From NCBI GenBank assembly GCA_002269645.1, contig NIVC01001545.1, positions 1 through 64,000 of the forward strand: a stretch of DNA of 64,000 bases, read 5' to 3'. The notes under the pieces were generated by a model, which was given only the letters and a program-made list of their open reading frames with translations, did not search any database and had not been told where the DNA came from. Source of the stretch: Macrostomum lignano (Eukaryota). The position numbers were made by a program, and so were the translations under genes. Below are positions 1-42,594 of this stretch, piece by piece (positions within the stretch are counted from its first letter, which is position 1; the number at the start of each line of letters is the position of its first letter).

Positions 1-790
1 GCAGATGTCAGAGATTTAAGCGCTACACGGTATCAGAGATATTAAGCGCCACAGGTATCAGAGATTTAAGCGCTACAGGTATCAAATATTTAAGCGCCAC
101 AGGTATTAGAGATTTAAGCGCTACAGGTATCAGAGATTTAAGCGCCGCAGATTCAGATTTAAGCGCTACAGGTATCAGAGATTTAAGCGCCGGCAGTTAT
201 TGTCAGATTTAAGCGCCACAGGTTTAGAGATTTAAAGGCGCTACAGGTATCGAGATTTAAGCGCTACAGGTATTAGATATTTAAGCGCCACAGGTATCAG
301 AGATTTAAGCGCTATACAGGTATCAGAGATTTAAGCGCCACAGGTATCAGAGATTTAAGCGCCACAGGTATCAGAGATTTAAGCGCTATACAGGTATCAG
401 AGATTTAAGCGCCACAGGTATCAGAGATTTAAGCGCCACAGGTATCAGAGATTTAAGCGCCGCAGATATCAGATTTAAGCGCTACAGGTATCAGAGATTT
501 AAGCGCCGCATGTCAGATTTAAGCGCACAATATTTAGAGATTTAAGCGCTACAGGTATCAGATTTAAGCGCTACAGGTATTAGATATTTAAGCGCCACAG
601 TATCAGAGATTTAAGCGCTACAGGTATCAGATTTAAGCGCTACAGGTATTAGATATTTAAGCGCCACAGGTATCAGAGATTTAAGCGCTACAGGTATCAG
701 AGATTTAAGCGCCACAGGTATCAGAGATTTAAGCGACGCAGATGTCAGATTTAAGCGCTACAGGTATCAGAGATTTAAGCGCCGCAGGTA
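1..790. repeat. ~24-bp tandem satellite (CAGGTATCAGAGATTTAAGCGC[C/T]A), probably in the first intron of TTC5
   Basis: Period 24 (CAGGTATC at 341 and 365). Many 22-26 bp indel variants. Runs off the left edge of the window. Confidence 0.95.
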
Positions 791-866
791 TCAGAGTGCC
801 ACGAAAAAAGTGATAATGGTCGGTGAAATTTGAATAATTATTCATTATACTTGTGACGCATTTCAG

Positions 867-3800
867 GCCGAATCGAGCTCCGATCGTTTGGCCGCCTTCC
901 AACAGGAAGTGGAGGCTCTGGTGCGATTCAAAGACGAATACTTTGCCCAGCAACAGGAGCAGCAGCAACGGGGCGGTCGTTCAGCGGCAGTTGAGGCTCG
1001 GGTTGAGCAGATCGCCTCCCGATACGCCGATGTCGGCGCCTCAATCAGCGGCCCGGACAGTCGCTGCGCCCACGCCCTGTCTATGGGCAAACTCTACACT
1101 GCTTGGAGGAATTCGACCAGCGAGCCTTGGACAATTTGACTACGGCCGCGAAACTGAAGCCGGACCAGCCGGAGGCCTGGCGCTTGCTCGGAAACCTACT
1201 GGAAACGGCGGGACTATCAGTCCGCTTATAACTGCTTCAACAGCGCATTGCAGCACGGCAGGGATAGCGCTGTGCTGCGCAATCTGTCCATGGTGCTGCG
1301 AGCTCTGCCGTTTGCCAGTGCGGCAGATCGGCTGGCTAAGGTGAGGAGAGTCTGGCCAAGGCTAAGGAGGCCCTGCAGATGGATATTAAGGTGAGGCGCG
1401 AGATTCTGTAACTCCTGTCTGGGCTGTGTGCACCCTGTCACATTGTCACCACAACCGGCGAGAGGCACACATAGCGTGGGGATCAAGGACTACTTAGGAC
1501 GGGAAAATACGTTTCTCGGAAAACTTTAAGAGGCAGGCTTTTCAGAAAGGCAAGACATCGAAAGATGAACTCTGGGTCTGCCACCTTTAAAAGCAATAAC
1601 CATTTTTTGTGCTGAAAATGAAAGCCTTCTATCTTCGTTATCCTTGGCAGTCGTACGCACAGGCTCACATTTACACAGGAGTGTACAGGGGCCCTGACTT
1701 TATTATATCGTTAGGCATGTACACTTCACTTGTGCTTTGGGGGTTGGACCTCGAGGGCGCTAATTATTTAGCCCCAAATGAATGCCACTGCACTTGGAAT
1801 CGAGCCTGGGCCGCTGGCTCATCATTGGCTATACGGCTCCCCTTGTAGGTAAAAAAAGGTAAATCTGTAGGTTGGTAAGAATAAGAACCGGATAACAGGT
1901 GAATTATATAACAGCCCTCTGTCTCACTCACTCGAAACAATTTCCCTGAAATGAGTTACCTCTGAAACAGCAAGGGGTTTGTCTACGTATCGTGCCTTTG
2001 ATAGTAGTATATTCTGCATCTATAGATTTGATTAAATTCTCATTTAATAAATCTACTTGCAATGCCGCAGGACGGGCGCAGCTGGGCGGTGCTTGGCAAC
2101 GCCTACCTGAGCTGCTACTTCACCAAGGACCAGTCCAGCACCTCCATGCGCTTGGCCATGTCCGCCTACAGCAACGCTATGAAGGACCCGGTGGCCAGCA
2201 GCGACCCGGATCTGCACTACAACTCTGCCATGGCGCACGTCTACCTGGATCAGTACGAGCAGGCGCTCAGCGGATTTCGGATGGCCCACAGGCTTGACCC
2301 TAGTTGGCCGCAGGCTCAGGTAATCTCGGATGCGGCAGTGTTGAGATGCTGGGAATAAAAAACATTTCGGAAATAATTGGAAGTGGAAGTAATTGATTGC
2401 ACCTGCCCTACTCGGCCAGATGTGCAACCGGCAGCTCAGCCGCAGCTATTGCGCGGCGCATCCAAGGACGGGGGGGGTCGTCACACACACCCTCAATTAC
2501 CCGGCACAGCTAATGCTGGCACCCATTTTACAACTGGGTGAACTGAAGCAATGCCGTGTTTAAGTGTCGGCAGTGGGTCGGGATTCGAACCCCTGACCTT
2601 TCAGTCTTAATTCGGCACTGTAACCACAAGGCTACACCCCTAATTAATTAGTCTTTAATTCAAAGATTATGGAATAAGAAAAGAATGCCTTTGATGAGGC
2701 TATAGGATTCTGAAGATCTCAGAAGATCTGTAAGTCGGTATGATGCTGTGTAGTGATGAGGCTGGTGCTATTTGATAAAAACTGGCTCTTATCCTGCAGG
2801 AGAAAGTCACCCAGCTGCCTCGCATGCTGAGTAGCATCCAGGACATCATCGACAGTCGCGGCCGTTTGAAGCCTCGCGTCTATAAATCCATGATGGAAGG
2901 CTTCGCCCAGCGCCGGGTCAAGGATCTCGCCCCTACGCTGGTGGCGGCTACTCTGACAGCCGAGGCGAGAGCGTCGCCCTCGCCGAGGTTCGTCTGAGCC
3001 AGCTAAAAGTGGGAGCCAACCCTGAGACTGTGCTGCTGCTGCGAGTGATCGGGCTGCCCCGAGCTGATGACCAGGTAGGTACTTCCGGCGGCTGCTTTTA
3101 CTCGGTTTTCTTTCGCACTTCCGGTTTTTACTTTAAGTAGCAAATTTATAATTTAGGTTGGTGTTAGAAGTAACAATGTTACACTTCCGGGTTGTATATT
3201 TCAGTAGCTAATTGATACTTCCGGGTTGTATATTTCAGTAGCTAATTGATACTTCCGGGTTGTATATTTCAGTAGCTAATTGATACTTCCGGGTTGTATA
3301 TTTAAGTAGTTATTTAATACTTCCGGTTGGTATATTTTAGTAGTTAATTAATACTTCCGGTTGGTATATTTCAGTAGTTAATTAATACTTCCGGTTGGTA
3401 TATTTCAGTAGTTAATTAATACTTCCGGTTGGTATATTTTAGTAGTTAATTAATACTTCCGGTTGGTATATTTCAGTAGCTAATTAATACTTCCGGTTGG
3501 TATATTTTAGTAGTTAATTAATACTTCCGGTTGGTATATTTCAGTAGTTAATTAATACTTCCGGTTGGTATATTTCAGTAGGTAATTAATACTTCCGGTT
3601 GGTATATTTTAGTAGTTAATTAATACTTCCGGGTTGTATATTTAAGTAGTTATTTAATACTTCCGGTTGGTATATTTTAGTAGTTAATAATACTTCCGGT
3701 TGGTATATTTCAGTAGTTAATTAATACTTCCGGTTGGTATATTTCAGTAGTTAATTAATACTTCCGGTTGGTATATTTTAGTAGTTAATTAATACTTCCG

Positions 3801-4973
3801 GTTGGTATATTTTAGTAGTTAATTAATACTTCCGGTTGGTATATTTCAGTAGCTAATTAATACTTCCGGTTGGTATATTTTAGTAGTTAATTAATACTTC
3901 CGGTTGGTATATTTCAGTAGCTAATTAATACTTCCGGTTGGTATATTTAAGTAGTTAATTAATACTTCCGGTTGGTATATTTTAGTAGTTAATTAATACT
4001 TCCGGTTGGTATATTTTCAGTAGTTAATTAATACTTCCGGTTGGTATATTTCAGTAGTTAATTAATACTTCCGGTTGGTATATTTTAGTAGTTAATTAAT
4101 ACTTCCGGTTGGTATATTTTAGTAGTTAATTAATACTTCCGGTTGGTATATTTCAGTAGTTAATTAATACTTCCGGTTGGTATATTTCAGTAGTTAATTA
4201 ATACTTCCGGTTGGTATATTTCAGTAGTTAATTAATACTTCCGGTTGGTATATTTTAGTAGTTAATTAATACTTCCGGTTGGTATATTTCAGTAGTTAAT
4301 TAATACTTCCGGTTGGTATATTTTAGTAGCTAATTAATACTTCCGGTTGGTATATTTCAGTAGCTTATTAATACTTCCGGTTGGTATATTTAAGTAGTTA
4401 ATTAATACTTCCGGTTGGTATATTTCAGTAGTTAATTAATACTTCCGGTTGGTATATTTCAGTAGTTAATTAATACTTCCGGTTGGTATATTTCAGTAGT
4501 TAATTAATACTTCCGGTTGGTATATTTCAGTAGTTAATTAATACTTCCGGTTGGTATATTTCAGTAGTTAATTAATACTTTAGGTCGGTATATTCAACTA
4601 GTTAGTTGATAATTCGATAGCAGAAAACGTTTACAAAATTTTCGACCGTGTTTTGTTAAAATTTAAACTTTCAACCGCTCCATTAGGTTTGCCTCTCGTA
4701 TGCGCAATGGACTCAGACGAAGCCTGCTCACTCGTCAACATATTCAATATCTCGGCGGACCGAGGCCTCACAGTCGGCGACGCCATGGCGATCCCGGAGC
4801 CCACGCTAAGCAGGTTGGATTTCGCTGACAGCGAGACGGGCCGGAAGTTCCAGTTCCCAATAGTGCGGGTGCCCTCGCCAGACTGCCTGGTGGTGAATGG
4901 CAAGAAGGCCAAGGCCAGTGCATGGCGCAGCGCCACCGTGTTCTCATCCCAGGTGTCCAGCTCGTCCACCTGA
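867..4973 (+). CDS. TTC5: Tetratricopeptide repeat protein 5 (TTC5/STRAP) orthologue; first exon lies outside the window; four frameshifting indels as assembled
   Basis: Exons 867-1390, 2071-2319, 2800-3078, 4687-4973 with AG/GT boundaries. Peptides EAWRLLG-TYWKRRDYQSAYNCF, LRNLSMVLR, ALQMDIK|DGRSWAVLGNAYLS, SSDPDLHYN, LDPSWP, GDAMAIPEP and LVVNGK follow my recollection of human TTC5 (EAWNQLGEVYWKK, LQNLSMVLR, VQMDVHDGRSWYILGNSYLS, SSNPDLHLN, LDPAWP, GDSVAIPEP, LVVNGK). Frame changes near 1098, 1192, 1343 and 2930-2933. Confidence 0.9.
2395..2640 (-). mobile_element. tRNA-derived SINE, copy 1
   Basis: Minus strand has A-box-like TAGCCTTGTGG and B box GGTTCGAATCC. The body CATTGCTTCAGTTCACCCAGTTGTAAAATGGGT is shared with copies at ~8100, ~37260 and ~44225. 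Confidence 0.8.
3180..4580. repeat. 34-bp tandem satellite (~41 copies) in the last TTC5 intron
   Basis: Unit TAATACTTCCGGTTGGTATATTT[C/T]AGTAGTTAAT. Period 34 (ATACTTCCGG at 3317 and 3351). Confidence 0.97.
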
Positions 4974-5109
4974 GCTCGGCTTGGACTGTCCTCAGGCGCG
5001 GGAAGTTCTTGCCAATTGGCTGCAAGAATGAATCGATTGATTGTCCTGTGAATTCTAAATCCCAATGTCCTCAGATTTCCGGCCTTCTCCCAGTTCCACA
5101 ACACTTAAA

Positions 5110-6763: not shown

Positions 6764-8032
6764 ATGGACGGTCAAAGCAGCAATGCGACTTCCGTCGGTA
6801 CAGAGCAACTCGAAACGGCGTCAACTTTGAGTGAACGTCAGCGAGACCAGATCCAGCATATTAGTCGGTATAGAGATGTGCTTCTTCTAAGACTTGAATC
6901 CATGCAGATAAACCAGGCTGGCCAGCCGCTCAGTCTTCGGCATTTAAGCAACGTAGTTGACTGGCCAGAGTATTACGTTCGAGTCCAGACTGGCTCTAGT
7001 AAAGTAGACGAGTTGATTGCAGATTTAGATAAGTTTTTCGGCGCCAGTCTGGCTCAGCTGAATCAGGTGCGCGATGAGGCCAGACAGAAGCTGGCAAGAT
7101 TTTTTCCGAGCTCAGTGGAAGCGGAGCAGCTTGAGTTGCGCATGTTCCAGCGTCTAAGATCTTGTCAGGAGGCCAACGAGTCGAATTTCGAAGAAATCTA
7201 TCAATTTGCAATGGTCGCTCTGTGCTCATTTCTGCACTGGCTGCAGCCGTCGCCTTGGGAGCGTCGGCAGCAACTTAGCAAACGAATGCGCTGGCTTCAC
7301 GAGCAGTACCAGGACACCATCAAGCAGCGCATTGACGCAGAGTATCGAAGCAATCCTTTCTATGCTCAGACGCTTCAGAGGTTGTGCCTTGTGTTAAAAG
7401 CGCCGGATTCTTTCTTGGAGAAGCGCTCATACTCCGAGGGCATTGTCGGATCGGTTGATCGTCTGGAAGCGTTTCTGCAAAACTTCTCCAATCAGACGGC
7501 TGAGCAGCGCCTTAAAGACCAGCTGATCTGTCGGATGCGGATTTTCCATCGGCAGCACGGAGATTATATCAGAAAGCGCATGGAAACTAGCAGTATTAGC
7601 CCGGTCGTCTTGGACAAGCTTCGTAAAATGCTCGCCGACTTTGAATCACCCGAGTCATTTTTCCTCCATTATAAAGACGATTTGGAAGCCATGCAAAAAA
7701 TGCTGGATCGATCCGAGTCCACTCTTGAAGCCGTATTGCCGGACAAATTGCATCCGAGCTTGCGCAAAGTCCGCACAGAGGCTCGCGCGAAATTGGCGCA
7801 ATTGTATCGGAGTCCCGCACTTGGTGACTACTATGTAGACCTGCTGCTCAAGCTGTACCCGAAACCAGAGAAGCTGGAGACTCACCTGTACAACCGGTGT
7901 CGAAGGGTTACATCGGACAGTGCCGAGCTGGTTTTATACGAGCGATACATGAAGAATCTGCTGATTGTGCTCAATGGTCGCTGGCATGAGAGCCTGTTAA
8001 GACCGCTTCTAATCGAAGAACGCGAGCTTTAG
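6764..8032 (+). CDS. MED15-derived protein A (~422 aa, single coding exon): central-domain / KIX / central / central / KIX modules, no polyQ, no MED15 C-terminal domain
   Basis: Uninterrupted ORF with ATG at 6764 after a CTCTTTACAG acceptor. Segments align by eye to the local MED15: VRTEARAKLAQLYRSPALG...KLETHLYNRC vs VETRRKLANLYRSPAPG...QLEDHVFRRC, and RMRIFHRQHGDYIRKRME...KLRKMLADFESPESF vs RMRQLHQQHSETVRARME...KLRQICNILETPENF. Confidence 0.8.
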   Translation: MDGQSSNATSVGTEQLETASTLSERQRDQIQHISRYRDVLLLRLESMQINQAGQPLSLRHLSNVVDWPEYYVRVQTGSSKVDELIADLDKFFGASLAQLNQVRDEARQKLARFFPSSVEAEQLELRMFQRLRSCQEANESNFEEIYQFAMVALCSFLHWLQPSPWERRQQLSKRMRWLHEQYQDTIKQRIDAEYRSNPFYAQTLQRLCLVLKAPDSFLEKRSYSEGIVGSVDRLEAFLQNFSNQTAEQRLKDQLICRMRIFHRQHGDYIRKRMETSSISPVVLDKLRKMLADFESPESFFLHYKDDLEAMQKMLDRSESTLEAVLPDKLHPSLRKVRTEARAKLAQLYRSPALGDYYVDLLLKLYPKPEKLETHLYNRCRRVTSDSAELVLYERYMKNLLIVLNGRWHESLLRPLLIEEREL

Positions 8033-8094
8033 TATCGTAGCTACGCTCGTAGTTTGCGCGACTTGGTAATTGGGTTTCTTAGGCCTAATGGAGA

Positions 8095-8331
8095 GATGTG
8101 CAACAGCTCAGGCGTAGGTTTAGTGTGACGCATCTGAAGGCTGTTTACGGCTGTTCAGTCAAAGGACCGGGATAGGGGGTCGCCGCACACACCCTCAATT
8201 ACCTCAGCTAATGCTGCTGGCACCCATTTTACAGCTGGGTTAAGTGTCATGCTTGTTTCAAGTCGGTCAAGAATCGAACCCCCGACTTTTTAGTCGTGAG
8301 TCCGACGTTCTAACCACTAGGCTACAACCCC
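8095..8331 (-). mobile_element. tRNA-derived SINE, copy 2
   Basis: Minus strand GTTGTAGCCTAGTGGTTAGAACGTCGGACTCACGACT...GGTTCGATTC, followed by the shared SINE body. Confidence 0.75.
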
Positions 8332-8334
8332 CAA

Positions 8335-8480
8335 TTGATAATATATATATATATTATTATTATTATTAATATTATTATAATATTAATAATATTAATATTA
8401 ATAATATTAATATTATTATTGATAATATATATATATACAGTTCAGGTATTATATATATTATATTATATATATATAATACC
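8335..8480. repeat. AT-only low-complexity tract ((TA)n/(TAT)n)
   Basis: Sequence is almost entirely A/T. The 8335-8595 ORF is an artefact of it. Confidence 0.85.
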
Positions 8481-9419
8481 TGAACACTATTCGAATACAT
8501 GTATATTGAAATCTACTGATCTTGTAGGTCATTGTTATAAAATAAGATTTTATCTTGATTCTGGGATTTTGATCGTTTTGCACGCCGATAGCTGAACACG
8601 TCTGCGAAGTGTTATTTGTGCTCACCACAAAACGTACTCGTTGTCGAAGTCTGCTAAAACTGGCAATTGAAGTTACGCAAAGAAACCAGCTTCTAATCTG
8701 CGGGGTCTATCAGTGTGCATTTCTACTGTTGGTGTAAAATTCTGTTGCCTTTGATTGCTTTTATTGCATTCATTTATCCACTTTTATTCGAAACTAAGTA
8801 CGAAATTTTGACTGGCGCTCAGACTTTATTAATCAGTAAAGCAAAGTTTTTTCAGTTTCCGCATTTCAACACTGCCGCTCAAGTTTAACGCTTGTATGCA
8901 ATTTTGTAGTTTTCAGAAAATAAAAAATGACTAAACTTGTTTGCTCTTATCTTTGATAATTTTTCTTGTTTTTCTTTAAATTGATTTCAAACCAACATAC
9001 TAGGATAGAAAAATGGAAGTGCTAGACTGCTCTACATTTCTTAAATAGAAAGATACAGTCAGTTAATAAAATTATTTCTTTTAAAAATTCGGAAGCGAAC
9101 TATACTAACGACGTTTTTAGCTATATGAAAAGATTAAAAAATTGTTATGTAATCCTGGGTCCAAACCTAGGAATTTATAGATCGTATATTCACTACATAG
9201 GCCACTATATTTACTACTTGGGCGCGTCAATAGAGTCCTAGGGGTGTTTGGGGTTAGGTCGGGGTTCGTGGTCGGGATTAGGGGTCGGGGTTCCCGATAA
9301 ATGTTCGGGATCGGGGTTCGGGACGGGATTTTGGACCGGGATTTCGGGGTTTTCGGGGTTTCGCAAATTTTCTGAATTCCCATAGAACTACGAAAAAATC
9401 CTTATGAATTAGCTTTTTT

Positions 9420-10506: not shown

Positions 10507-11367
10507 CTTGTTCCTTCGGCAGCTGATGAGGACGGGTAGTTATGAGCCGAAGCAGGGATAAGCTTTCCGTTCAGAAAATTAGGATTCTATGTTATTCTTT
10601 ACGCCTAAAAACCATTAAAATGGCACGACTCAGCTCATTGGTTTTATGATTATATTTTATCATATTAGCTGACTGTGTACGTGTAACAGAGATGATAAAA
10701 TAGATTCAAAAAACCAAAGGTTCAAGCTGTGCCATGCATTTTTAATGACTTTTAGATACAGGAAATGCACGTAAAATCGAAAAACTATTTAGAATCCTAA
10801 TTTTCTGAGAGAAAGCTTTATAACTACAAATCGAGCTATAACAAAGGCACAACATATCAAAATATAAACATTGGGTCTGCCTCCTATCGAAAGCAAAAAA
10901 AATTGTGTTCAAAAATAAAAACTTCCTTTTTTCGTAGGGTATTTTTCGTCGAACAGTGGCCTTCAAAACGTTTTTCATAGATTTCGAGTGTTGCGTCCTT
11001 CTACTTTAGTATGGTCTACTTAACATGGTTGTTGCAGTCTCACGCAGAAACTGCGCGAGTTCAAACCCAATTGCGTCATTCCAAGGAAGCCTCTATGTTC
11101 CTTTCGCTCCTCGACACTCAAAATATAGATTTTTTTGGACTAAACTTGTACACACAAAGCCTTGAATGCCCTAGATATGTGCAAGAATGACATGACACAT
11201 CATTTATGTACATAGGTTACTCGGGCTCCACTTTATGAGCTCAAGTTGACAGGCCCTTTGGTTAAAGTAGTTCAGAAGCTGGATCCATTTATGCTAATTC
11301 ATATCGAAAGTTATCAAATTAAGTTTAAAAACAATCTTTCAGCGCTACCGCGGCTTCAGAGAGTAAA

Positions 11368-12425
11368 ATGGATAACCAAAACCGTGCCCTACGATACGTC
11401 ATTGTGCTGAGACTCGATGCAAGCTGGCTAATCTGTACCGCAGCCCTGCACCTGGAAACCAGGTAGCTCAGCTGCTGGACCGCTATCCCACCGCTGAACA
11501 ACTTGAAGATTCCATTTTCAGGCATTGTCAGGCTCAGCAGCGGAGTGGTGGCGTCAGCTTTGATCAGCACCAGTACCTGAGCCTTGTGTCCAAGGTGGAA
11601 GACGCGCTGACGGGTCGCCTGTCGCATCAGCGACAGCAGCTGCGTGCTGAGACACGACGCAAATTGGCTAATCTGTACCGCAGCCCCGCACAGGGACACC
11701 ATGTAACCGAGCTGCTGAACCGCTGTCCCACCGCTGAACAGCTAGAAGATTGCCTATTCAGGTATTGTCATTCTCGCCAACAAAATGGTGGTGTCAGCTT
11801 TGATAAGCAGAAGTACCTGCACGCTGTGTCCACTATGGAAGGCGTACTGACCGGTCGCCTGCCGCTTAAGCCACAACAGCTGCAGCAGATGCGTGTTGAG
11901 ACTCGGCGCAAATTTGCTAATCTGTACCGCAGCCCTGCACCTGGAAATCTGGTAGCCGATCTGCTGAGACAATATCCTACTGTTGAGCAGCTGGAGGATT
12001 TGGCTTTCAGGCGTAGTCAGGTGCAACAGCAGAGAAGTCGCGCCAGCTTTGATCAGCAGTACCTGAGCATTGTGTCCAAGCTGGAAGACTTACTGACAGG
12101 TCGCCTGCCGCCGGCGCAAGAGCAAAAGCTGGAGCAGATGCTGCAGCAACAGCAGCAGCGGGAGCAGCAGCTGCGTGTTGAGACTCGACGCAAGCTGGCT
12201 AATCTGTACCGCAGCCCTACACCTGGAAACCTGGTAGCTCAGCTGCTGAGCCGCTATCCCACCGCTGAACAACTTGAAGATTTCGTTTTCAGGCGTAGTC
12301 AGGCGCACCAGCGGAGTGGTGGCGCCAGCTTTGACCAGCAGTACCTGAGCCTTGTGTCCAACCTGGAAGGCATACTGACGGGTCGCATGCTAAGCCTGCT
12401 TCCATTCGATGAACGCGAGATTTAA
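11368..12425 (+). CDS. MED15-derived protein B: four tandem KIX-like repeats; frameshift between the homologous ATG (11368) and repeat 1, so possibly a pseudogene or initiated downstream
   Basis: One open frame 11376-12425 holds four copies of (V/A)ETRRKLANLYRSP.PG..V..LL.RYPT.EQLED..FR..Q.....G.SFD.Q.YLS.VS.LE..LTG, with E codons at 11409, 11649, 11898 and 12180. DNA is near-identical in places to the MED15 KIX at ~15125-15335. The 5' UTR acceptor context is homologous to that of MED15. Confidence 0.8.
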
Positions 12426-12544
12426 TATCGCATCTAGTTCGTGCCACATGTAACTAATTGTTTGTCCGATATATAAGCATCATTTAGTGTAACAATAAGT
12501 AATAATTTACTACAACTGGCCTAATAGGAAAACCCACTATGGCG

Positions 12545-12680
12545 TATCGGAAAGCTGCGTACGGCTGTTCAGTCAAAAGACTGGAGTTGCCACACGTTCC
12601 AAGTAGGTCGAGAAACGAACCCCCCCCCTACCTTTTAGTCGTGCTCCGATGCTCTAACCACTGGTTTTAATAGAACCCCC
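12545..12680 (-). mobile_element. tRNA-derived SINE, copy 3 (internally deleted)
   Basis: GCTGCGTACGGCTGTTCAGTCAAAAGACTGG and TTTTAGTCGTG.TCCGATGCTCTAACCACT match copy 2. Confidence 0.65.
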
Positions 12681-13551
12681 AATTTGTTATATATGAAGGA
12701 CCTGAATATTATTCGAATGCATATTTGAATCTAGTGATCTCGTAGGTCATTGTTTTAAAATATGATTTTAGTCGTATTGCACGCTAGTTGCTAAACGCGT
12801 CTGCCCAAAGTGTTATGTATGCTGACCAAAAAATGTACTCGTTGCCGTATTTATCCCTGCCTGCCGAAGCCTGCTGAAACAGGAAATTGAAATTGCGCAA
12901 AGAACCCAAAGTAGCTACTATCTAAAACAGTAACAACTTGCGCCCATATGCGGTCTATCAATGTGCATTTTTACTAATGGTGTAAAACCCGTTAAGAACG
13001 TTACCATGGCAAGAATCGCTAGAGTCATTGTAAACAACTCTCTAGTGAGTCTAGCGACTCTGGTGCAACTATTATGACTTTTTAACGACTCATGCGACGG
13101 AGAGGCGACTGTTGCGTCACAAGCGCGTCACGTGAGTTGCAGAATCGTGAAACAGTCGTTCTATTGTATTCATTTATCTGCTTTTATTAAGTACGAAACT
13201 GGCTGGCGCTCCGAATTTTTACATCAGTAACGCAAAACTGTCGCAGTCGGTAGTTTTTTTCAGTTTGCGCATTTCAACAATTAACTACTGCTCAAGTTTA
13301 ACAACTTTTTGTATGCAATTTTGCCGTTTTATCCAGAAAGTAGATACGAAAAGGACTGAATTTTTTTGTTCCATCTTTGGTAATTTTTATTTGTCTTTTC
13401 TTAATTTATTTCAAACCAACAGGAAAACACTACGAGACTGACTTGAAGCCAAAAGATACGTTATAATTCTCGACTCTTATTTTCGTTACCTCTTACTTTT
13501 ACGTTGACCATACACAATATTTCTATGGCTAACTGTGCCAGAATCATTTGA

Positions 13552-14249
13552 GGGGTGCTTTCACAACGTCGAAAAGTAAATTATTTCACAAGGTCGAAAC
13601 TTCACAAGGTCGAAATTTCACAACATAGAAAACTTTAGCAAGAGACTTCATAAGGTCGAAATTTCACAAGGTCGAAATTTCACAACATCGAAAACTCAAA
13701 TAGCAGCCACTTTCACAAGGTCGAAATTTCACAACATCGAAATATCTAGCAAGAGATTTCATAAGGTCGAAATTTCACAAGGTCGAAATTTCATAACATC
13801 GAAAACTCAAGTGCAGCCACTTTCACAAGGTCGAAACTTCATAAGCTCGAAATTTCACAAAGTCGAAAATTTTATATATCAAGAACCATACAGTAGTTTT
13901 CTACGTTGTGAAATTTCGACCTTATGAAATTTCGACCTTATGAAGTCTCTTGCTAAAATTTTCGATGTTGTGAAATTTCGACCTTGTGAAGTTTCGACCT
14001 TATGAAAGTGGCTGCTGTTTAACTTTTCTACGTTGTGAAATTTCGACCTTGTGAAATTTCGACCTTATGAAGTCCTTTGCTAAAGCTTTCGATGTTGTGA
14101 AATTTCGACCTTGTGAAGTTTCGACCTTGTGAAAGTGGCTGCTATTTGAGTTTTCGATGTTATGAAATTTCGACCTTGTGAAATTTCGACCTTGTGAAAG
14201 AAGGTGCTTTCGACGTTGTGAAATTTCGAGTTTGTGAAACCCCCCCCCC
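13552..14249. mobile_element. Foldback/MULE-like non-autonomous element: long inverted arms made of 17-bp subrepeats
   Basis: TTCACAAGGTCGAAATT arrays run forward (13560-13870) and reversed (13900-14240). G-run and C-run termini. Flanks ATCATTTGA (13543-13551) and ATCAGTTGA (14250-14258) form a 9-bp TSD with one mismatch. Confidence 0.8.
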
Positions 14250-15055
14250 ATCAGTTGAAGCGTGCATTCTTCACTTTGATTGGTAAAGTTGACTTTTAGC
14301 GACACAAATGGACACCTAATGCCAAACGAGCGTAAATCAAGAACAGCTGGCAACAGACCTCGGCAATCACACTAAGAGAGCCAACCAGCTAGGGTTCCTC
14401 ACTGCCGCAAAATCTAGGCAGTAGCACAAACACGTGCTGGACTATTGACCCCTGTACTGACTCACTGGGGCGGAGCGGGGGTAGTGTGAAAAGGCGCGGT
14501 TGGAGGATTTCAGCTGGGGGGTAAGAGCCAACAAATGAGCCTTGGTTTTAAAAATGCAATAAAATGCTTCTGTTTAACTTGCTACTGAACTGAAAGTAGT
14601 TTACATGCAAATGTGCTGAGTGGCCCATCTAGTTATTCTAGTATCTGGGTTTTTTGTAAGTTGAATGCACGCTCTATTTGATTCTGGCACAGAATTATTG
14701 CCGAATGGTTAATGTTTTGTCTATGGGCTTGCCAATGTCCAACAAGCGTCAATTTAGTTCATAGCTGAGACGCTGACATTCCAGCGTTACTCCACAGCCC
14801 ACAGATGGTTGCGAGTAGGCAAGAGCTGTCAGCCTTGCTACCTTAAGCAAACGTATTTCGGATTAAATTCACGGCACTTAAGCACAAATAGGCTGCAAAA
14901 AGCTATATTAAATACTTAATTATTTATAGGGTATAAAATACTTTTGTAAGCCTAATTTGTAGTGTTCCGTAAACTCAATCTCAATTCATATAAATTCATA
15001 CCGTGAGCTATGAAATCACCATCGCCATCTTTCAGAGCTACCGGCTTCAGAAAAA

Positions 15056-17907
15056 ATGGAGCCGAACCAAAACTATGGCCAACGATACCCCATCATGCAG
15101 CAACAGCAGCTGCAGCAGCTGCGTGTTGAGACTCGACGCAAGCTGGCTAATCTGTACCGCAGCCCTGCACCTGGAAACCAGGTAGCCCAGCTGCTAAACC
15201 GCTATCCCACCGCTGATCAACTGGAGGATCACGTTTTCAGGCGTTGTCAGGCTCACCAGCAAGGTGGTGGCGTCAGCTTTGACCAGCAGTACCTGAGCAT
15301 TGTGTCCAAGCTGGAGGACGCACTGACGGGTCGCCTGCCGCAGCCGCAACAGCCGCAGCAGATGATGCAGCAGCAGCAGCCGCCGCCTACTCAAGTGATG
15401 CAACAGCAATTGCAGCAGCAGCAGCAGCAGCAGATGATGCAACAGCAGCCTCCGCCGCAACCTCAGCCTCAGGTGATTCGGCCTCAAATGCCGACTGATC
15501 CGCTGGTGTCGCTTTCAAACATGGTCGGCGGTGGCCCGGTTGGCGTCAGCAACATCGTTGTCGGTGGTGCCCGGATGGGGCAGCAGAGTGTGCCGTTGCA
15601 GCCTCGCATGGGGCCCAGGCCTGTTCCGCAGCAGCAGCAACAGCCGCCTCCCAACCAGCTTCCACCATTGAATGAGCGTCAGCAGATTCAAGTGCAGCGC
15701 ATGCGGCAGCTCCACCAGCAGCACAGCGAGACGGTCAGAGCCCGGATGGAAAATTCGCACGGCAATGCGGCCAATTTTGAGAAGCTGCGCCAGATTTGCA
15801 ACATTCTCGAGACGCCTGAAAATTTTGTACGCAACCAGCGGGATCCGGATAAAATTGACAACACAATCAGGCAGTTGGAGAGCATTCTGCGGCCCAATGC
15901 GCCTCACGCTCAGGCACTGCAGCAGCAGCACATGCTACAACAACAGAGACTTCAGCAGCAGCAGCAGCAGCAGCAGCAAATGCAACAGCAGCAACTGCAG
16001 CACCAGCAGCTACAGCAGCAGCAACAACTCCAGCAACAGCAGCAGCAACAACTGCAACAACAGCAATTGCAGCAACAGCAATTGCAACTGCAGCAGCAAC
16101 AGCAATTTCAGCAGCAGAAATTGCAACAGCACCAGATGATGTCGCAGATGCAGCAACAACAACAGCAGCAGCAGCAATCGCCAATGCCCATGTCCAGTGC
16201 AGCTCCTGACAGCGTCGCTGCTTCGTCGCATGACATTCCTCCGGCACCCCGTCGACTTGGTGAAACACTTCTTAAAGTACGTAAAAGTACGCCAACCAAT
16301 CACCTCTTAGTTGACGCTATAAATTCGCTGTCAAGGTTCACCTTTACTACAAAAGTGTTCGGCCTCCAATACCTTTTTTTAGAGCAAAACATCATCAACT
16401 TGGTGTTTTGAAAGCCGTTCCCTATCTGTCCGTTGCCCAACGATTCAAAATCACTAACAAGTTTTCTCCAGCCAACGATTGAAAGAAGCAACCAGAATCC
16501 ACGGAACATTCTGTCACGATAGATTGCATCCGCCGTCAGTTGCATCCCCACCGGAGTGGAGAGGGGGGCATGTCCCCCGGCCCCAGTAAAAGCTGTGGGG
16601 GGGGACATGCCAGTGCTTTGTCCCACCCGCCTCACCTTGTAACCCGCTACGGAAATCAATCATTTCTCCTTTGGGCGCCAAAATGTAGCGCCTTTGGCGC
16701 CAAAAAGAGTGCCTGCGGCGCCAAAATGGGTGTCTGCATGCGGTGCCAAAATGAGTGCCTGTCTGCGGCGCCAAAATGAGTGCCTGTCTGCGGCGCCAAA
16801 ATAAGTGCCTGTCTGCGGCGCCAAAATGAGTGCCTGTCTGCGGCGCCAAAATAAGTGCCTGTCTGCGGCGCCAAAATGAGTGCCTGTCTGCGGCGCCAAA
16901 ATAAGTGCCTGTCTGCGGCGCCAAAATGAGTGCCTTCTGCGGCGCCGAAATGAGTGCCTTCTGCGGCGCCGAAATGATCGCTAGAAACTCCGATTCCTAA
17001 AAATGTAGGAATTTAGTCATGTAGAATTCTTGGCTTTGTCCCCCTCCCTTCTAAGAAGTCCATTGGCGGCGCCCCTGTCTGCCGTCACAAGTAAAGATTT
17101 TTACCAACAAAATCATCTCTTCCACTCCTCCAGGAAATCGAATCTGTTCTCAAAAGTCCCGTCTGCGATTCTGTCTGGTCTCGCTTCGCCTCTGAGGTCC
17201 GTTCGGCGAATCAGGGCATTGTCCCGCCTCGCGACACTCTGTTCATCCCCGTCTCCGTTGACTCGGCAGCTGTTGGCGCCTCCGACGCGCCGCCGGTGAC
17301 TCCCGCGCCGGCTCCAGATCAGCCGTTGCGCTCCGAGCTCGCCGACCTGCCGCCCTACTGGCGCGTCCGAGTCTTGACCAGCTCGGCCGGCCCTGTCGAT
17401 CCGGACAGCAGCAAAGACGACGCCGCCGACAATCAGGAAGACGAGTCGGCGGATGCTGCCGACGCTTCTAAAGTTGAGGGCAGCGACGCGGTAACCTCTA
17501 GACGGGTTCGTCTGCGCGCCGTCTACACGAACCGGCACTTGATGCCCGACGGCGCCGCGCCGGAGCTGCTGATCACCCTGGCGCCCGGCTACCCGACTGT
17601 CCGGTCCGCCACCGCGCGACTTCTGCCGCCGCGCCTATCGGCAGCTGATAGCGCCGACAATGGCAGCGACAAGAGCAGCAGCTGCAGTCGGAGCGCCGAG
17701 CTGACCGCGGACGCCGCCGAACTGCGCCGGCTGATCCAGACCGAGTGGCGATCGGCCTACGCGGAGTACAAGCGGGTCTATCGGGACAGGAACAGCCTCA
17801 CGGGAGTGCTGGACGCCTATCACAAAGCCCTGCTGGTGGCCTACGATAGCTGGGCCCCCGGCAGTGAGTTCAGCCTGGCCCAGGTGCGAGCCTTTATGCG
17901 GCGCTGA
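15056..17907 (+). CDS. MED15: Mediator subunit 15 (ARC105/MDT-15), ~664 aa
   Basis: Exons 15056-16276 and 17134-17907 (AAA|GTACGT ... CTCCAG|GAA, phase 0, frame continuous). KIX LEDHVFRRC..QQYLSIVSKL (human MESHVFLKAK..DEYLSLVARL). Q/P-rich region. Central KLRQICNILETP (KMKSLLDILTDP). PolyQ. C-terminal ESVLKSPV, PLRSELADL, APELLITLAPGYP and SLTGVLDAY (ANIRSPV, VLQGEVARL, VPPLELSVPADYP, SVTALLNTW). Human motifs are from memory. Confidence 0.9.
16720..16975. repeat. 25-bp minisatellite in the MED15 intron
   Basis: Unit GCGCCAAAAT[G/A]AGTGCCTGTCTGCG. Period 25 (16746 and 16771). About 10 copies. Confidence 0.9.
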
Positions 17908-18520: not shown

Positions 18521-19099
18521 GCAACCAATACGATAGTCCCGTAATGCAGCCCCACAATAAAATCCTGGATACATCCCTGAATAGTAATTGTTTTAACATT
18601 TATCCTTTGTTTTCTCTCTTAGCTTATATTACTTAAAGTACTTCCTAAGCTGTTCTGTCTACTTAGATCGGCCTTGGTTTAGGTCAACTTAGATATTTGT
18701 TTTTTAATAATTAAAACATTAATTATGACGCCGCCATCTGTTGAGAGAACCTGCTACTGGAAGGTTAAAGAAACAATGGAACTAAAGATCGCACTGTTTA
18801 CTCGGAATTAGACGAAGTGCAGACGCTAAAAACCAAGGATTTTTGTTTTTTTATTACGGCTCGTACTTAAAAATCACTTGAAGTAAAGATTGATAATCAT
18901 AACGTCAGCTAGTTTAATGAGAAAAATACGAGTATAGGAGCAGCACTGCATTACATTTTTAGCACAGAGTGACAATTTCAAAGTGCAAAGCATTAGAAAA
19001 CGCGGTAAAGAGAAGTTTTGAGAGTTCGATTTACTCGTGGAATATTTATGAAAACCAAGCAACAGAGTCTCGAGATATAAGCATAGGGTTTCTGCCAAC

Positions 19100-19415
19100 T
19101 TATTAGATCCGGGAAATTTCGGGGAGATTCTATTGACAATAAAGTTTCGACAATAACTTCATTTCCTGTCTGACAGGCGCACATCAGCGGCGTGATTCCT
19201 ACCTTATCCGGCTGATCTGGCTTTGCGCCTTTCTTTAACAACGCGCTAAAAACGTCCTGATGGCCCTCAAGAGCAGCCATGTGCAAGCCGGTCCTCCCGT
19301 CGGCGCTGCAGATGAAGTTCGGGTCGCCGCCGCTAAGAAGGTACTTGTGCAGCGCATTCATATCTCCGGCTTGAACCGAGGCAATGAATAGTTTATCTGG
19401 AGCTTTGTCTGCCAT
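19100..19415 (-). pseudogene. Truncated paralogue of the ankyrin-repeat gene N-terminus
   Basis: GRTGLHMAALEGHQDVFSALL...DKVGITPLMCACQTGNE closely parallels GRTGLHMAALSGHQDVFNTLL...DKQGITPLMCASQKGNE in the 34122 gene. Similarity collapses after ~95 codons. Confidence 0.75.
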
Positions 19416-24361: not shown

Positions 24362-25504
24362 AAAAAATACTGAAAAAGGAAAAAAATGGAAATACAAATA
24401 TATCGAACAGCGACGAACAATAAATTAACAAAAAACTTATTTCGAAAAATACCGAACAGAATAATTTACATGCGAATTAAATTATTGTTGGCATCAGTTA
24501 TTCGGATGAAATTATTGAAAAAATACACAAAGCATTGGAACGAACAGGAATTAAAATAGATATTTGTCAACGAAATGCTTCTTGAATTTCAAAATATTTA
24601 ACATTCTTTGATGCAACGAGTTAGAGCCGAATTTAAGTACACACAATGATTAATTATAGGAAATATCAAAGGTGTCGCAAACCAACTCTAAACACTGCAA
24701 AGCAAATCACGAGACGCAAAACCAGCACAGGCACACTACCTTATGACTAAGAGAACAGCCCAAAGCGAGACGAAACAGGGCGCACCTAGCAACCCGGAAC
24801 CACCAAGCAAACGGAGCACAAGAGAAACGGGAAAAGAATTCGAGCAAGCCCGGAGGCGAGCTCAGGTCCGCGCACAAACACGAACCCAGCCGAGGACCGA
24901 TCAAGAACGACCGCAAGGGCACGCCGATCAACGGCGCCGAAACCGACCTCAGAACCCGACGAACACAGACCACGGTGCTCTGCACAGCCACACAGGCTTG
25001 ACAACGGCGGCAGAAAACGCGCTAAGAAGACTGATAAGCGCTACTTAACTTAAAGACGAAACGCGATTGAATGACGATGCAAATTAAGTAAACTCTAGGA
25101 CTGCGCTTACCGGAAACTAAATTTGCGTCAGTAATGACAATTAAGATGAATTTTTTCTGCGCTTTTTGTGAATTTAACAAGTTTATTATTAGGAAGCCCA
25201 CAGTGTGTACCTATGCTTAGTAACTTTCTATTGCATCGTCATCGCTGGAAAAGAAGCAACCACAGACTACTTAACTGTCGTTTATACTAAGTAATCCGTG
25301 GACTGGACTACTTTACTTGGTACGGACTACTGCTAATCCGTAGCACTTAAATAGTCCGTGGAAGTAACTAAATGGTTCATAAAAATAACTCTGTCTCTGT
25401 TTACTCTGTCAGCCTAAAATAATGTATAATATTTGAGTGGCTAATCTTAAAAGATTGACCGCCTTAAGAGCGGTTTGTTTTGTATGCAGGCAGCGCTTCT
25501 GCCA

Positions 25505-27420
25505 AACTAGAATTGCTTGATAGTTTGAAATCGAATTTGCTTGAAGTAGAATTTGAAAAGTAATAACTGGTACAGGTAATCGAATTTGCTTGAAGTAGAA
25601 TTTGAAAAGTAATAACTGGTACAGGTAATCGAATTTGCTTGAAGTAGAACTTGAAAAGTAATAACTGGTACAGGTAATCGAATTTGCTTGAAGTAGAATT
25701 TGAAAAGTAATAACTGGTACAGGTAATCGAATTTGCTTGAAGTAGAATTTGAAAAGTAATAACTGGTACAGGTAATCGAATTTGCTTGAAGTAGAATTTG
25801 AAAAGTAATAACTGGTACAGGTAATCGAATTTGCTTGAAGTAGAATTTGAAAAGTAATAACTGGTACAGGTAATCGAATTTGCTTGAAGTAGAATTTGAA
25901 AAGTAATAACTGGTACAGGTAATCGAATTTGCTTGAAGTAGAACTTGAAAAGTAATAACTGGTACAGGTAATCGAATTTGCTTGAAGTAGAACTTGAAAA
26001 GTAATAACTGGTACAGGTAATCGAATTTGCTTGAAGTAGAATTTGAAAAGTAATAACTGGTACAGGTAATCGAATTTGCTTGAAGTAGAATTTGAAAAGT
26101 AATAACTGGTACAGGTAATCGAATTTGCTTGAAGTAGAACTTGAAAAGTAATAACTGGTACAGGTAATCGAATTTGCTTGAAGTAGAATTTGAAAAGTAA
26201 TAACTGGTACAGGTAATCGAATTTGCTTGAAGTAGAATTTGAAAAGTAATAACTGGTACAGGTAATCGAATTTGCTTGAAGTAGAACTTGAAAAGTAATA
26301 ACTGGTACAGGTAATCGAATTTGCTTGAAGTAGAATTTGAAAAGTAATAACTGGTACAGGTAATCGAATTTGCTTGAAGTAGAATTTGAAAAGTAATAAC
26401 TGGTACAGGTAATCGAATTTGCTTGAAGTAGAACTTGAAAAGTAATAACTGGTACAGGTAATCGAATTTGCTTGAAGTAGAACTTGAAAAGTAATAACTG
26501 GTACAGGTAATCGAATTTGCTTGAAGTAGAACTTGAAAAGTAATAACTGGTACAGGTAATCGAATTTGCTTGAAGTAGAATTTGAAAAGTAATAACTGGT
26601 ACAGGTAATCGAATTTGCTTGAAGTAGAATTTGAAAAGTAATAACTGGTACAGGTAATCGAATTTGCTTGAAGTAGAATTTGAAAAGTAATAACTGGTAC
26701 AGGTAATCGAATTTGCTTGAAGTAGAATTTGAAAAGTAATAACTGGTACAGGTAATCGAATTTGCTTGAAGTAGAATTTGAAAAGTAATAACTGGTACAG
26801 GTAATCGAATTTGCTTGAAGTAGAATTTGAAAAGTAATAACTGGTACAGGTAATCGAATTTGCTTGAAGTAGAATTTGAAAAGTAATAACTGGTACAGGT
26901 AATCGAATTTGCTTGAAGTAGAATTTGAAAAGTAATAACTGGTACAGGTAATCGAATTTGCTTGAAGTAGAATTTGAAAAGTAATAACTGGTACAGGTAA
27001 TCGAATTTGCTTGAAGTAGAATTTGAAAAGTAATAACTGGTACAGGTAATCGAATTTGCTTGAAGTAGAACTTGAAAAGTAATAACTGGTACAGGTAATC
27101 GAATTTGCTTGAAGTAGAACTTGAAAAGTAATAACTGGTACAGGTAATCGAATTTGCTTGAAGTAGAATTTGAAAAGTAATAACTGGTACAGGTAATCGA
27201 ATTTGCTTGAAGTAGAATTTGAAAAGTAATAACTGGTACAGGTAATCGAATTTGCTTGAAGTAGAACTTGAAAAGTAATAACTGGTACAGGTAATCGAAT
27301 TTGCTTGAAGTAGAATTTGAAAAGTAATAACTGGTACAGGTAATCGAATTTGCTTGAAGTAGAATTTGAAAAGTAATAACTGGTACAGGTAATCGAAGCT
27401 TGAAGTAGTATTTGAAACGC
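25505..27420. repeat. 49-bp tandem satellite (~38 copies), highly homogeneous
   Basis: Unit AGGTAATCGAATTTGCTTGAAGTAGAA[T/C]TTGAAAAGTAATAACTGGTAC. Essentially one variable site. Confidence 0.98.
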
Positions 27421-28083
27421 TGCGACACGTACACAAAGTTTCATTTTTTTCTCAATTTTGCTTCCTTCCCGGAAGTGACGTAGATATGGCTTAGATTAGA
27501 GGCAAGCTGCAGCTCGTCAGATAGCACCCTGATGATTTTATGAATAACAATTAACCGTCACAAATCAAAGCGACAGTCGACCTGCATTTGCAGTTAAAGA
27601 AAGCAGTTATGATCGTTTCACTGACCCCTGAAAACGTACGAGTACGTACTAGTCAGTCAGAGTAAAAACTGTGTCTTGAAACTGGCCCTAGGACCACTTC
27701 AGAGGGGGATTCACAAATGTGTGAAGGAATTCAACGCAAGAGTCAGACGCTTAATCGCTCATTGGCTCTGTGTGCAGGTCCCCTAACGAGGGCAACAACA
27801 GCAGTATTTTAAGGTCTTTCTCCACTTTTAGTATTCGTATCGAATCCAATGGCTAAACTACATTTGAGCTGTAATGACCCGAATGAGTTCTCCAGTTTAT
27901 TAATTAATTTTTTCAGAACGAAGGTAGGAAAACTATAACTTAGAACTTTAAGTTCCTGAGGTCACTAACCAGGCAATGAGCTAGTAAGTTTTCGGGTTGA
28001 AAGAAAAGTTCAGTTGAGCGTTAGATTATGTATCATTCATGGATGTGGATATGCATTCAGTATTGTTCACCCAAGCTTCAGCT

Positions 28084-34000: not shown

Positions 34001-34122
34001 CCTTGATCATCTGAGACGTTTGGGTCAAGATTTTGCGTCAGATACTTGTATACAGTCCGATTGTCTCCTGCCTTAACTGAAGCAAAGAATATGTCTCTAG
34101 CGGCTGTTGGTGCAGCTGCCAT
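28084..34122 (-). CDS. Large ankyrin-repeat protein, ~1772 aa
   Basis: Exons (minus) 34122-29162, 29051-28881 and 28270-28084. Both introns are GT-AG and phase 2, giving a continuous frame. Roughly 40 ANK motifs by eye (G.TPLH.A, D..G.TAL), followed by a low-complexity tail. Confidence 0.88.
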
Positions 34123-34749
34123 GACTCTGCTGTTGAAAGTTCTAGCAGCAAAATTGCTAAGATTACAAGCCGACTGCAGTCGGTTCAAACAATCGTCTTT
34201 AAACTGCCCTCCTATGGAATTTAAAGCGCTGCATTAAATAAAATACTACAAGCTATGAAGGCAAGCAATGTGCACAGTATTGTTCTGCTGTACAGATTAA
34301 ATTGAAGCACTGTATTCTAGGTGGAGTAATAGATGAACATTCACAAGTACAATGAGCCCAGCCAACCAGGGTAAAAATGGAAGTTCAGCTTTTTGATGCC
34401 TGTACAAGAGTACAGAGAGGGCTGTACGGAAAGCAGAGTTGCAGCACTCTATCTCTTGTTTCTACCACTGCGCACAGACAGAAACACAGCTATGGAAAGC
34501 TATGAGCTAAATTATGTTCAAATGTTAGACAGAAAGATAAAAGCAATTGTATAATTGAAAACTGCACTGAAATGCGCGGCAGTTAGCGTCAAGGTTAGAG
34601 AATGAATATAAACAGAAGGTGTAAAAATGACGAAAGCATTATCGCCGAGTGATAATTAGCAAGCACGGTGTAATGCAGTAGCACATGCAGAAACTCTAAC
34701 TGTAGTGGACGGAAACACTTATATATAAGAGATGCGGCTTAAAAATTCG

Positions 34750-35735
34750 ATCTCTTGTTGGGCGCCCCTGTCTCTTGGTGGGCGCCCCTGTCTCTTGTTG
34801 GGCGCCCCTGTCTCTTGGTGGGCGTCCCTGTCTCTTGGTGGGCGCCCGTGTCTCTTGGTGGGCGCCCCTGTCTCTTGGTGGGCGTCCCTGTCTCTTGGTG
34901 GGCGTCCCTGTCTCTTGGTGGGTGCCCCTGTCTCTTGGTGGGTGCCCCTGTCTCTTGGTGGGCGTCCCTGTCTCTTGGTGGACGCCCCTGTCTCTTGTTG
35001 GGCGCCCCTGTCTCTTGGTGGGCGTCCCTGTCTCTTGGTGGGCGTCCCTGTCTCTTGGTGGGCGCCCCTGTCTCTTGATGGGCGTCCCTGTCTCTTGGTG
35101 GGCGTCCCTGTCTCTTGGTGGGCGCCCCTGTCTCTTGGTGGGCGCCTCTGTCTCTTGGTGGGCGTCCCTGTCTCTTGGTGGGCGCCTCTGTCTCTTGGTG
35201 GGCGCCTCTGTCTCTTGGTGGGCGCCTCTGTCTCTTGGTGGGCGCCCCTGTCTCTTGGTGGGCGTCCCTGTCTCTTGGTGGGCGTCCCTGTCTCTTGGTG
35301 GGTGCCCCTGTCTCTTGGTGGGTGCCCCTGTCTCTTGGTGGGCGTCCCTGTCTCTTGGTGGACGCCCCTGTCTCTTGGTGGGCGTCCCTGTCTCTTGGTG
35401 GGCGTCCCTGTCTCTTGGTGGGCGTCCCTGTCTCTTGGTGGGCGCCCCTGTCTCTTGATGGGCGTCCCTGTCTCTTGGTGGGCGTCCCTGTCTCTTGGTG
35501 GGCGCCCCTGTCTCTTGGTGGGCGCCTCTGTCTCTTGGTGGGCGTCCCTGTCTCTTGGTGGGCGCCTCTGTCTCTTGGTGGGCGCCTCTGTCTCTTGGTG
35601 GGCGCCTCTGTCTCTTGGTGGGCGCCCCTGTCTCTTGGTGGGCGCCCCTGTCTCTTGGTGGGCGCCCCTGTCTCTTGGTGGGCGCCCCTGTCTCTTGGTG
35701 GGCGCCTCTGTCTCTTGGTGGGCGCCTCTGTCTCT
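34750..35735. repeat. 20-bp tandem satellite (~49 copies)
   Basis: Unit CTGTCTCTTGGTGGGCG[C/T]C[C/T]. The overlapping ORFs are repeat artefacts. Confidence 0.98.

Positions 35736-42563: not shown

Positions 42564-42594
<31 letters not shown>

Follow-up and report, generated by a model that had tools for sequence, protein, structure and literature searches.

We analysed positions 1 to 64,000 of contig NIVC01001545.1 of Macrostomum lignano (hereafter the window), in which a gene on the + strand carries an array of four tandem KIX-like units beside a MED15-like gene. In our judgement, and with moderate confidence, this locus is a lineage-specific paralogue of the adjacent MED15-like gene: an in-frame four-unit chimera that is transcribed and is a putative multivalent binder of MED15 ligands. 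The same locus is found on two sister contigs, NIVC01001542.1 and NIVC01002272.1, at about 96-98% identity to the window, which is expected because the genome is neopolyploid.

A frame on the + strand is open from 11376 to a TAA at 12423-12425 (350 codons) and contains the array, four in-frame units of about 80 codons each at 11403-12425. The unit cores (ETRRKLANLYRSP...LTGRL; ETRRKLANLY...LTGRL) begin at 11409, 11649, 11898 and 12180, with spacings of 240, 249 and 282 nucleotides (nt), each divisible by three. Tandem Repeats Finder reported a period-240 array at 11404-12111, and all four units were recovered by both self-BLAST and tblastn. The four in-frame repeats and their spacings, as described in an initial annotation made from the sequence, were thus confirmed, and so were the Gln-rich linkers between them (SHQRQQLRA, PLKPQQLQQMRV and PPAQEQKLEQMLQQQQQREQQLRV). 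The nucleotide identity of each unit (R1-R4) was taken against the N-terminal unit of the MED15-like gene (15128-15337):

11403..11642, + strand: unit 1 and linker, 90.5% nt identity to the MED15-like unit
11643..11891, + strand: unit 2 and linker, the most diverged, 79.5% nt and about 70% amino acid (aa) identity to the MED15-like unit
11892..12173, + strand: unit 3 and a long Gln-rich linker, 82.4% nt identity to the MED15-like unit
12174..12389, + strand: unit 4, 89.0% nt identity to the MED15-like unit (23/210 differ)

The four units are 73-90% identical among themselves, and the differences are mostly amino-acid changes, in line with the diversification of repeats proposed in the initial annotation. 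Unit 2, which had been singled out as more diverged, does have the lowest identity of the four. Unit 4 had been called near-identical to the MED15 unit, which overstates its similarity: R1 is marginally closer, and R1, R4 and the MED15-like unit are about equidistant (private changes 9, 11 and 11, respectively). Scanning the window for Rfam families and for tRNAs gave no matches.

The two ends of the gene match different neighbours, as the following features show:

11336..11342, + strand: putative acceptor site for spliced-leader trans-splicing (ctttcag); its homologue before the MED15-like gene is 15030-15035
12390..12425, + strand: C-terminal tail (M)LSLLPFDEREI and stop, common to the upstream paralogue (..SLLRPLLIEEREL, then stop) and not to MED15
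12426..13421, + strand: 3' flank, probably the 3' untranslated region (UTR) plus the sequence beyond it; the 6764-8032 gene has a paralogous 3' flank
6764..8032, + strand: upstream paralogue with MED15-mid-like and KIX-like units and the C-terminal tail of the array; sister copy PAA59366.1 (BOX15_Mlig026396g4)
15056..17907, + strand: parent MED15-like gene, 664 aa, in a single-intron model (exon 1 15056-16276, intron 16277-17133, exon 2 17134-17907)
15119-15337, + strand: N-terminal donor unit in the parent gene

The ctttcag motif, a leader of 20-25 nt and the ATG (11368 versus 15056) are homologous between the array gene and the MED15-like gene, with a 78% match between 11334-11397 and 15027-15088, and the GenBank coding sequence (CDS) on a sister contig begins directly after the acceptor AG. 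From about 12385 onwards, the array gene is collinear with the 6764-8032 gene: its tail, its stop and about 1 kb of downstream sequence correspond to the 3' end and 3' flank there (12385-12436 versus 7992-8043, 79% match; collinear blocks in 12540-13421 versus 8126-8997, 68-89%). The array gene has a MED15-type 5' end and units and a 6764-type 3' end, and is therefore chimeric. The proposal that it was copied from the adjacent MED15 gene holds for the units, the splice-acceptor motif, the 5'UTR and the ATG, but not for the 3' end, which is that of the upstream paralogue. No canonical AATAAA poly(A) signal was found downstream of the array. Between the array and the MED15-like gene, at 13559-14239, there are about 680 nt of palindromic and direct repeats with 71-88% identity.

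Published tables, which do not tell the genomic copies apart, show that the gene is transcribed and trans-spliced, with enrichment in proliferating somatic stem cells. The Mlig_3_7 annotation was built on transcripts, and its genes were cut at experimentally mapped trans-splice and poly(A) sites (PMC5730564). Cluster MligTCv3c-11554.1 corresponds to Mlig028310.g4 (2067 nt) and Mlig028310.g5 (1871 nt) (Grudniewska et al., 2018, PMC5816591, Suppl. Table 2), which are flagged TRANSSPLICED (trans-spliced) in the same table. Both are labelled 'non-conserved' (without human, planarian or schistosome homologue) and are assigned to the classes 'Irradiation', 'Int S/G2/M', 'S/G2/M, no gonads', 'Neoblast' and 'Neoblast, stringent' (PMC5816591). 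The log fold change (logFC) for G2/M versus G1 is 2.38 (false discovery rate 4.9e-14), with 1.86 for cut heads and 2.33 for juveniles, and the transcripts are depleted after irradiation (logFC -0.44, -0.54 and -0.60 after 12, 24 and 72 h, respectively; PMC5816591). The entry also lists sub-threshold Pfam matches to CAMSAP_CH and DUF3837, as in the present scan (PMC5816591). A 2016 analysis placed a de novo transcript, RNA1509_7893 (2544 nt; 5UTR_CDS_3UTR, that is, with a complete CDS), in the same class (PMC5173321). These records settle the question of transcription raised in the initial annotation in favour of a transcribed and trans-spliced locus. The further claim that the system is undescribed does not hold for the locus itself, which is annotated as an uncharacterised hypothetical protein and is present in published neoblast expression tables. 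Literature searches of main texts returned no mention of the locus tag, of the accession or of a Macrostomum MED15, and the gene is not mentioned in the supplement of Brand et al. (2020).

The intact copy of the gene lies on NIVC01002272.1 and is recorded as PAA59367.1 ('hypothetical protein BOX15_Mlig028310g4, partial', 359 aa from Met); there, the homologous ATG reads MDNQNRALRYVIVPPPQQLRAETRCKL... and continues in frame into all four units. Taken as a whole, the gene thus has an intact open reading frame (ORF) together with transcripts, as an expressed protein-coding gene should. The window copy has no in-frame start codon ahead of the array and is disabled at its 5' end, where three features are relevant:

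11368..11466, + strand: native ATG (11368-11370; homologous to the ATG at 15056), followed only by a 32-codon out-of-frame ORF, from the sister-contig comparison
11403..11404, + strand: site of a 22-nt deletion in a GTGCCGCCACCGCAGCCAGCTGC-type segment (GTGCCGCCACCGCAGCAGCTGC), with GTGC microhomology at the flanks, from three-contig alignments
11835..12425, + strand: ORF of 196 aa that starts at an internal ATG near the end of unit 2 and continues through units 3 and 4; this is the protein recorded for the window contig

The 22-nt deletion is found only on the window contig when compared with NIVC01001542.1 and NIVC01002272.1. By changing the reading frame between start codon and array, it leaves the native ATG at 11368 out of frame. 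Upstream, the frame of the array is closed in the window by a TAA at 11373-75, and the first in-frame ATG is at 11835; this is the fifth ATG of the transcript, and the four earlier ones open short ORFs. The deletion is unlikely to be a long-read assembly error. A four-unit protein would be made from the window copy only if the deletion were not real, and at best this copy yields the 196-aa two-unit product from a poor internal start. NIVC01001542.1 carries a 1-nt deletion in a CCC run (window position 11487), which could be a long-read assembly error, and an altered acceptor motif. Two of the three assembled copies therefore have frame-breaking indels in unit 1. In other flatworms the spliced leader ends in AUG; rescue of the frame by such an AUG was considered and rejected, as the TAA at 11373-75 lies in that frame.

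The four-unit array occurs in the same order on three independent contigs whose flanking variants are distinct (contig alignments), so the assembly artefact that the initial annotation had named as a possible refutation was not borne out. The 90% cluster of the array protein has three members, all from GCA_002269645.1. Apart from the lesions, the array CDS differs between contigs by two synonymous and no nonsynonymous changes, with a proportion of synonymous differences (pS) of about 0.008, versus about 0.03 in the flanking genes. The low pS of the array, despite two frame-broken copies, could stem from gene conversion, from a polishing artefact or from selection. The relationships among the contigs are mosaic, the outlier being the window in the 6764 gene and NIVC01001542.1 in exon 2 of the parent (17134-17907); this pattern suggests recombination or conversion among homeologous or allelic copies.

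Coding constraint on the units was assessed from their divergence. Nei-Gojobori ratios of nonsynonymous to synonymous divergence (dN/dS) among units were 0.43-0.74, except for R1-R4, where the value of 2.2 was not significant (Fisher P = 0.42). A GY94-type maximum-likelihood fit among the units gave an omega of 0.73, which was not significantly lower than 1 (likelihood-ratio test, P = 0.17). The units have diverged by a synonymous divergence (dS) of 0.35-0.45 and contain zero stops and zero out-of-frame indels. When neutral evolution was simulated on the fitted tree, all four cores stayed free of stops in 6% of runs. Every unit junction and indel is divisible by three, an outcome that slippage in CAG-rich linkers favours. 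Together these results are modest evidence for long-term upkeep as an ORF, and they fit a mixture of constraint and diversification, or relaxed selection.

Whether the unit is a KIX domain was examined with family-level and targeted tests. In hmmscan with E up to 10, neither the array, nor any single unit, nor the parent unit matched KIX (PF02172), KIX_2 (PF16987) or Med15 (PF09606), and the array and units gave only sub-threshold chance matches, for example to CAMSAP_CH at 20.3 bits. A profile search of the PDB with the unit profile gave no match. AlphaFold2 modelled the donor unit of the MED15-like gene (the first row of the alignment) as a confident four-helix bundle (predicted local distance difference test (pLDDT) 83, predicted template modelling score (pTM) 0.65). 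Foldseek found no KIX structure in the PDB for this model (best E = 1.7), small bundles and the 7-sequence alignment limiting the power of the search. The hhalign probability of the unit profile was 1.7% against the human MED15 KIX and 0.4% against the CBP KIX.

For the targeted test, the human MED15 sequence was matched residue by residue to PDB 7emf_O and 2gut_A. In a local-alignment shuffle test against the human MED15 KIX, the parent unit, R3 and R4 scored z 4.7-5.5 (P about 0.001) and R1 scored z 3.4, while R2 was not significant; the controls (reversed sequences and CBP) were null. The aligned region corresponds to helices 2-3 of the human KIX (LEDHVF/MESHVF, QYLSIVSKL/EYLSLVARL). The check by hidden Markov model (HMM) and structure that had been proposed for the KIX assignment thus failed in Pfam, the PDB profile search, Foldseek and hhalign (at most 2%), and only the targeted shuffle test was positive. 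We describe the units as KIX-like and probably of MED15 type; membership of the KIX family is not demonstrated.

The identity of the neighbour as MED15 rests on collinear architecture and not on HMM matches, and is stated here with corresponding caution. The parent has the order helical head, polyQ, middle domain, polyQ and C-terminal domain, and each of its three regions shows, by eye, motif-level similarity to human MED15 (LEDHVF/MESHVF, QYLSIVSKL/EYLSLVARL, LKSPV..SRF/IRSPV..RTF, APGYP/PADYP). In shuffle tests against human MED15 its head gave P about 0.002 and its middle domain P about 0.01, and its C-terminus was not significant (P = 0.14). Pfam found no KIX, KIX_2 or Med15 match in the spliced 664-aa parent, scans of the parent ORFs likewise gave neither KIX nor Med15, phmmer with the parent sequences gave no match in the PDB including 7emf_O, and PDB searches with the middle-domain profile and the C-terminal exon returned nothing relevant. 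The parent had no significant BLASTP similarity to human MED15 (E = 7.6), and the profile of its middle domain reached an hhalign probability of 0.6% when compared with the middle region of the human protein. The AlphaFold model of the C-terminal exon, made with no alignment, was unusable (pLDDT 45). The gene call for the parent spans 15038-17907 with a 670-aa product, and exact look-ups found the parent gene models of the present analysis not on record. Exon 2 is intact on all three contigs with pN/pS (the ratio of nonsynonymous to synonymous differences) of 0-0.18. The modelled intron measures 857, 834 and 725 nt depending on the contig; inside the 857-nt form, at 16514-16977, lies a tandem repeat with offsets of about 50 nt and 82-89% identity.

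In the upstream paralogue at 6764-8032, MED15-middle-like units occur three times (6827-7039, 7259-7477 and 7526-7738) and diverged head-like units twice (about 7040-7250 and 7766-7993); this gene is intact on all three contigs (pN/pS 0.32). It shares with the array gene the C-terminal tail, the 3' flank, KIX-like units and the gene cluster. It differs in that middle-like units are mixed in, in that its KIX-like units are much more diverged, and in being intact on every contig.

An exhaustive search with the unit profile among 1.84 billion representatives returned only the cluster of the array, the upstream paralogue and one unrelated (junk) repeat protein, and word-indexed homologue searches with the array, the C-terminal exon and the de-Q'd parent returned nothing further. 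No homologue was found outside M. lignano in these searches, which missed the parent protein as well; this absence is weak evidence because the searches failed to return the parent itself.

Among known systems, the closest is the MED15/ARC105/Gal11 KIX (2GUT; PF09606 N-terminus, PF16987). The donor unit resembles it in its N-terminal position within a MED15-like domain order and in its predicted helical bundle, in which model helices 3-4 align to human helices 2-3 with z about 5. The donor model departs from that domain by an additional short helix and by a loop insertion of 9 residues, and the units have no support from HMM, PDB-profile, hhalign or Foldseek searches; the array gene also differs from MED15 in having four head copies without the Mediator-anchoring parts. 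The CBP/p300 KIX is likewise a small helical activator-docking domain, and hhalign places only a short PT-D loop motif equivalently; the units have no significant similarity to it in any test, shuffle included.

Tandem and stand-alone KIX proteins have been catalogued in plants (PMC5668377, PMC3936767), and the plant KIX-only proteins resemble the array in containing only KIX-type modules, sometimes in tandem (PMC5668377, PMC3936767). They differ in their independent origin and in being recognised by KIX models. The array has four tandem units, of which none is positive with a KIX model, and therefore its likeness to the tandem-KIX and KIX-only class of KIXBASE is architectural only. We found no report of a tandem or stand-alone KIX protein in animals in the literature. 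To our knowledge, no animal protein consisting only of tandem KIX domains has been described. A different parallel is offered by domain-only decoy paralogues, the 'microProtein' logic by which Id proteins act on bHLH (basic helix-loop-helix) factors. Like these, the array protein contains nothing but the interaction module taken from a larger regulator, and competition with the parent would be predicted; unlike them, its module is multimerised and the interaction is only predicted.

Several features elsewhere in the window were recorded. Upstream of the array and on the same (+) strand, positions 1-5000 hold a gene call with a TTC5_OB Pfam match, which contains a long tandem repeat (3117-4615; period about 34 nt). 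Three long arrays of satellite or microsatellite type, open in several frames, lie at 25409-27444, 34732-35751 and 41456-43006, including a (TGGA)n-like tract that would read as IHPS repeats. Two sets of non-LTR (long terminal repeat) retrotransposon-like ORFs, at 46102-49805 (- strand) and 52027-54713 (+ strand), occur in GC-rich and AT-rich contexts, and by eye they resemble endonuclease, reverse transcriptase and RNase H. A Cys/His-rich ORF at 44832-45662 (+ strand) may be gag-like. A 1696-aa ankyrin-repeat protein is encoded by a single ORF at 29098-34188 (- strand), and a short ORF at 18993-19415 (- strand), with an N-terminal ankyrin segment like that of the 1696-aa protein, may be a fragmentary duplicate.

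The origin of the array can be pictured as follows. A partial duplication would have copied the trans-splice acceptor, the 5'UTR, the start codon and the KIX-like N-terminal helical domain of MED15; the domain-coding unit would then have been amplified to four in-frame tandem copies, and the gene would have acquired the short tail and 3' flank common to the upstream paralogue at 6764-8032. The intact form encodes only four head-domain modules with Gln-rich linkers between them. In MED15, the middle and C-terminal parts anchor the protein in Mediator. Because these anchoring parts are absent, the protein, which keeps putative activator-docking modules, would most likely be a free multivalent binder of MED15 ligands. 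Such a binder could act as a competitor or buffer, or as a scaffold, and could modulate the coupling of activators to Mediator in neoblasts; we infer a decoy or adaptor function on these grounds. The more specific proposal, that a Macrostomum-specific, neoblast-enriched 'poly-KIX' derived from the MED15 head is a multivalent decoy or scaffold for MED15-binding activators which tunes Mediator recruitment in stem cells of the flatworm, with its four modules diversified in ligand specificity, appears doubtful.

The results that weigh against a MED15-derived, maintained binder are the failed family-level searches with the units and the parent, the missing homologues, the omega not significantly below 1 and the frame lesions in unit 1. 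The last three also favour the main rival explanation, which sees the array as a decaying by-product of local segmental duplication, transcribed via its copy of the MED15 5' end in a trans-spliced cluster and without protein function. The stem-cell enrichment would then merely mirror the regulation of the parent, and decay would have started after genome doubling. We regard this as possible, though on the unlikely side. An omega of 0.73 that is indistinguishable from 1, frameshifts in unit 1 of two of the three copies (the window included), four short-ORF ATGs before the remaining window ORF and homologues found nowhere else all fit it, and the chance of about 0.06 that the frames stay open under neutrality is not negligible. 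It accounts less well for one fully intact copy, for units separated by a dS of 0.35-0.45 and yet with no stop and no out-of-frame indel, for the zero nonsynonymous versus two synonymous changes between copies, and for a complete-CDS de novo transcript with strong and reproducible neoblast enrichment.

Another explanation denies the units both KIX identity and activator docking. They would form a Macrostomum-specific helical, Gln-linked repeat with another role (for example in self-association or condensates), and the neighbour would be a Q-rich protein specific to this lineage and not MED15. In its favour, no family-level test succeeded, the C-terminus showed no significant similarity to that of human MED15 and the C-terminal AlphaFold model was unusable. 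Against it, both the N-terminal unit (P about 0.001) and the middle domain (P about 0.01) came out positive in the targeted tests, the matches are collinear with null controls, and by-eye motifs match human MED15 in all three regions; we consider this explanation improbable. That the array or its copy number is an artefact of assembly is scarcely credible. The assembly is a repeat-rich neopolyploid PacBio assembly and the array is unusually uniform across contigs, but its four units are too diverged (73-90% identical) to be collapsed, their order is the same on all three contigs although the flanking variants differ, and independent de novo transcripts map to the array.

If the array is a decaying duplicate after all, it would be an ordinary by-product of a repeat-rich neopolyploid genome. 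If instead its units are true MED15-type activator-docking modules, it would be the first animal protein known to us that consists solely of tandem KIX-like domains. The gene is young, lineage-specific and enriched in pluripotent stem cells, and its host is a flatworm amenable to transgenesis and RNA interference. As a concrete candidate it joins those 'stringent neoblast' transcripts, roughly 14%, that have no homologues, and it would offer a natural experiment on how coactivator docking domains can be separated from Mediator and given a new use as competitors or scaffolds.

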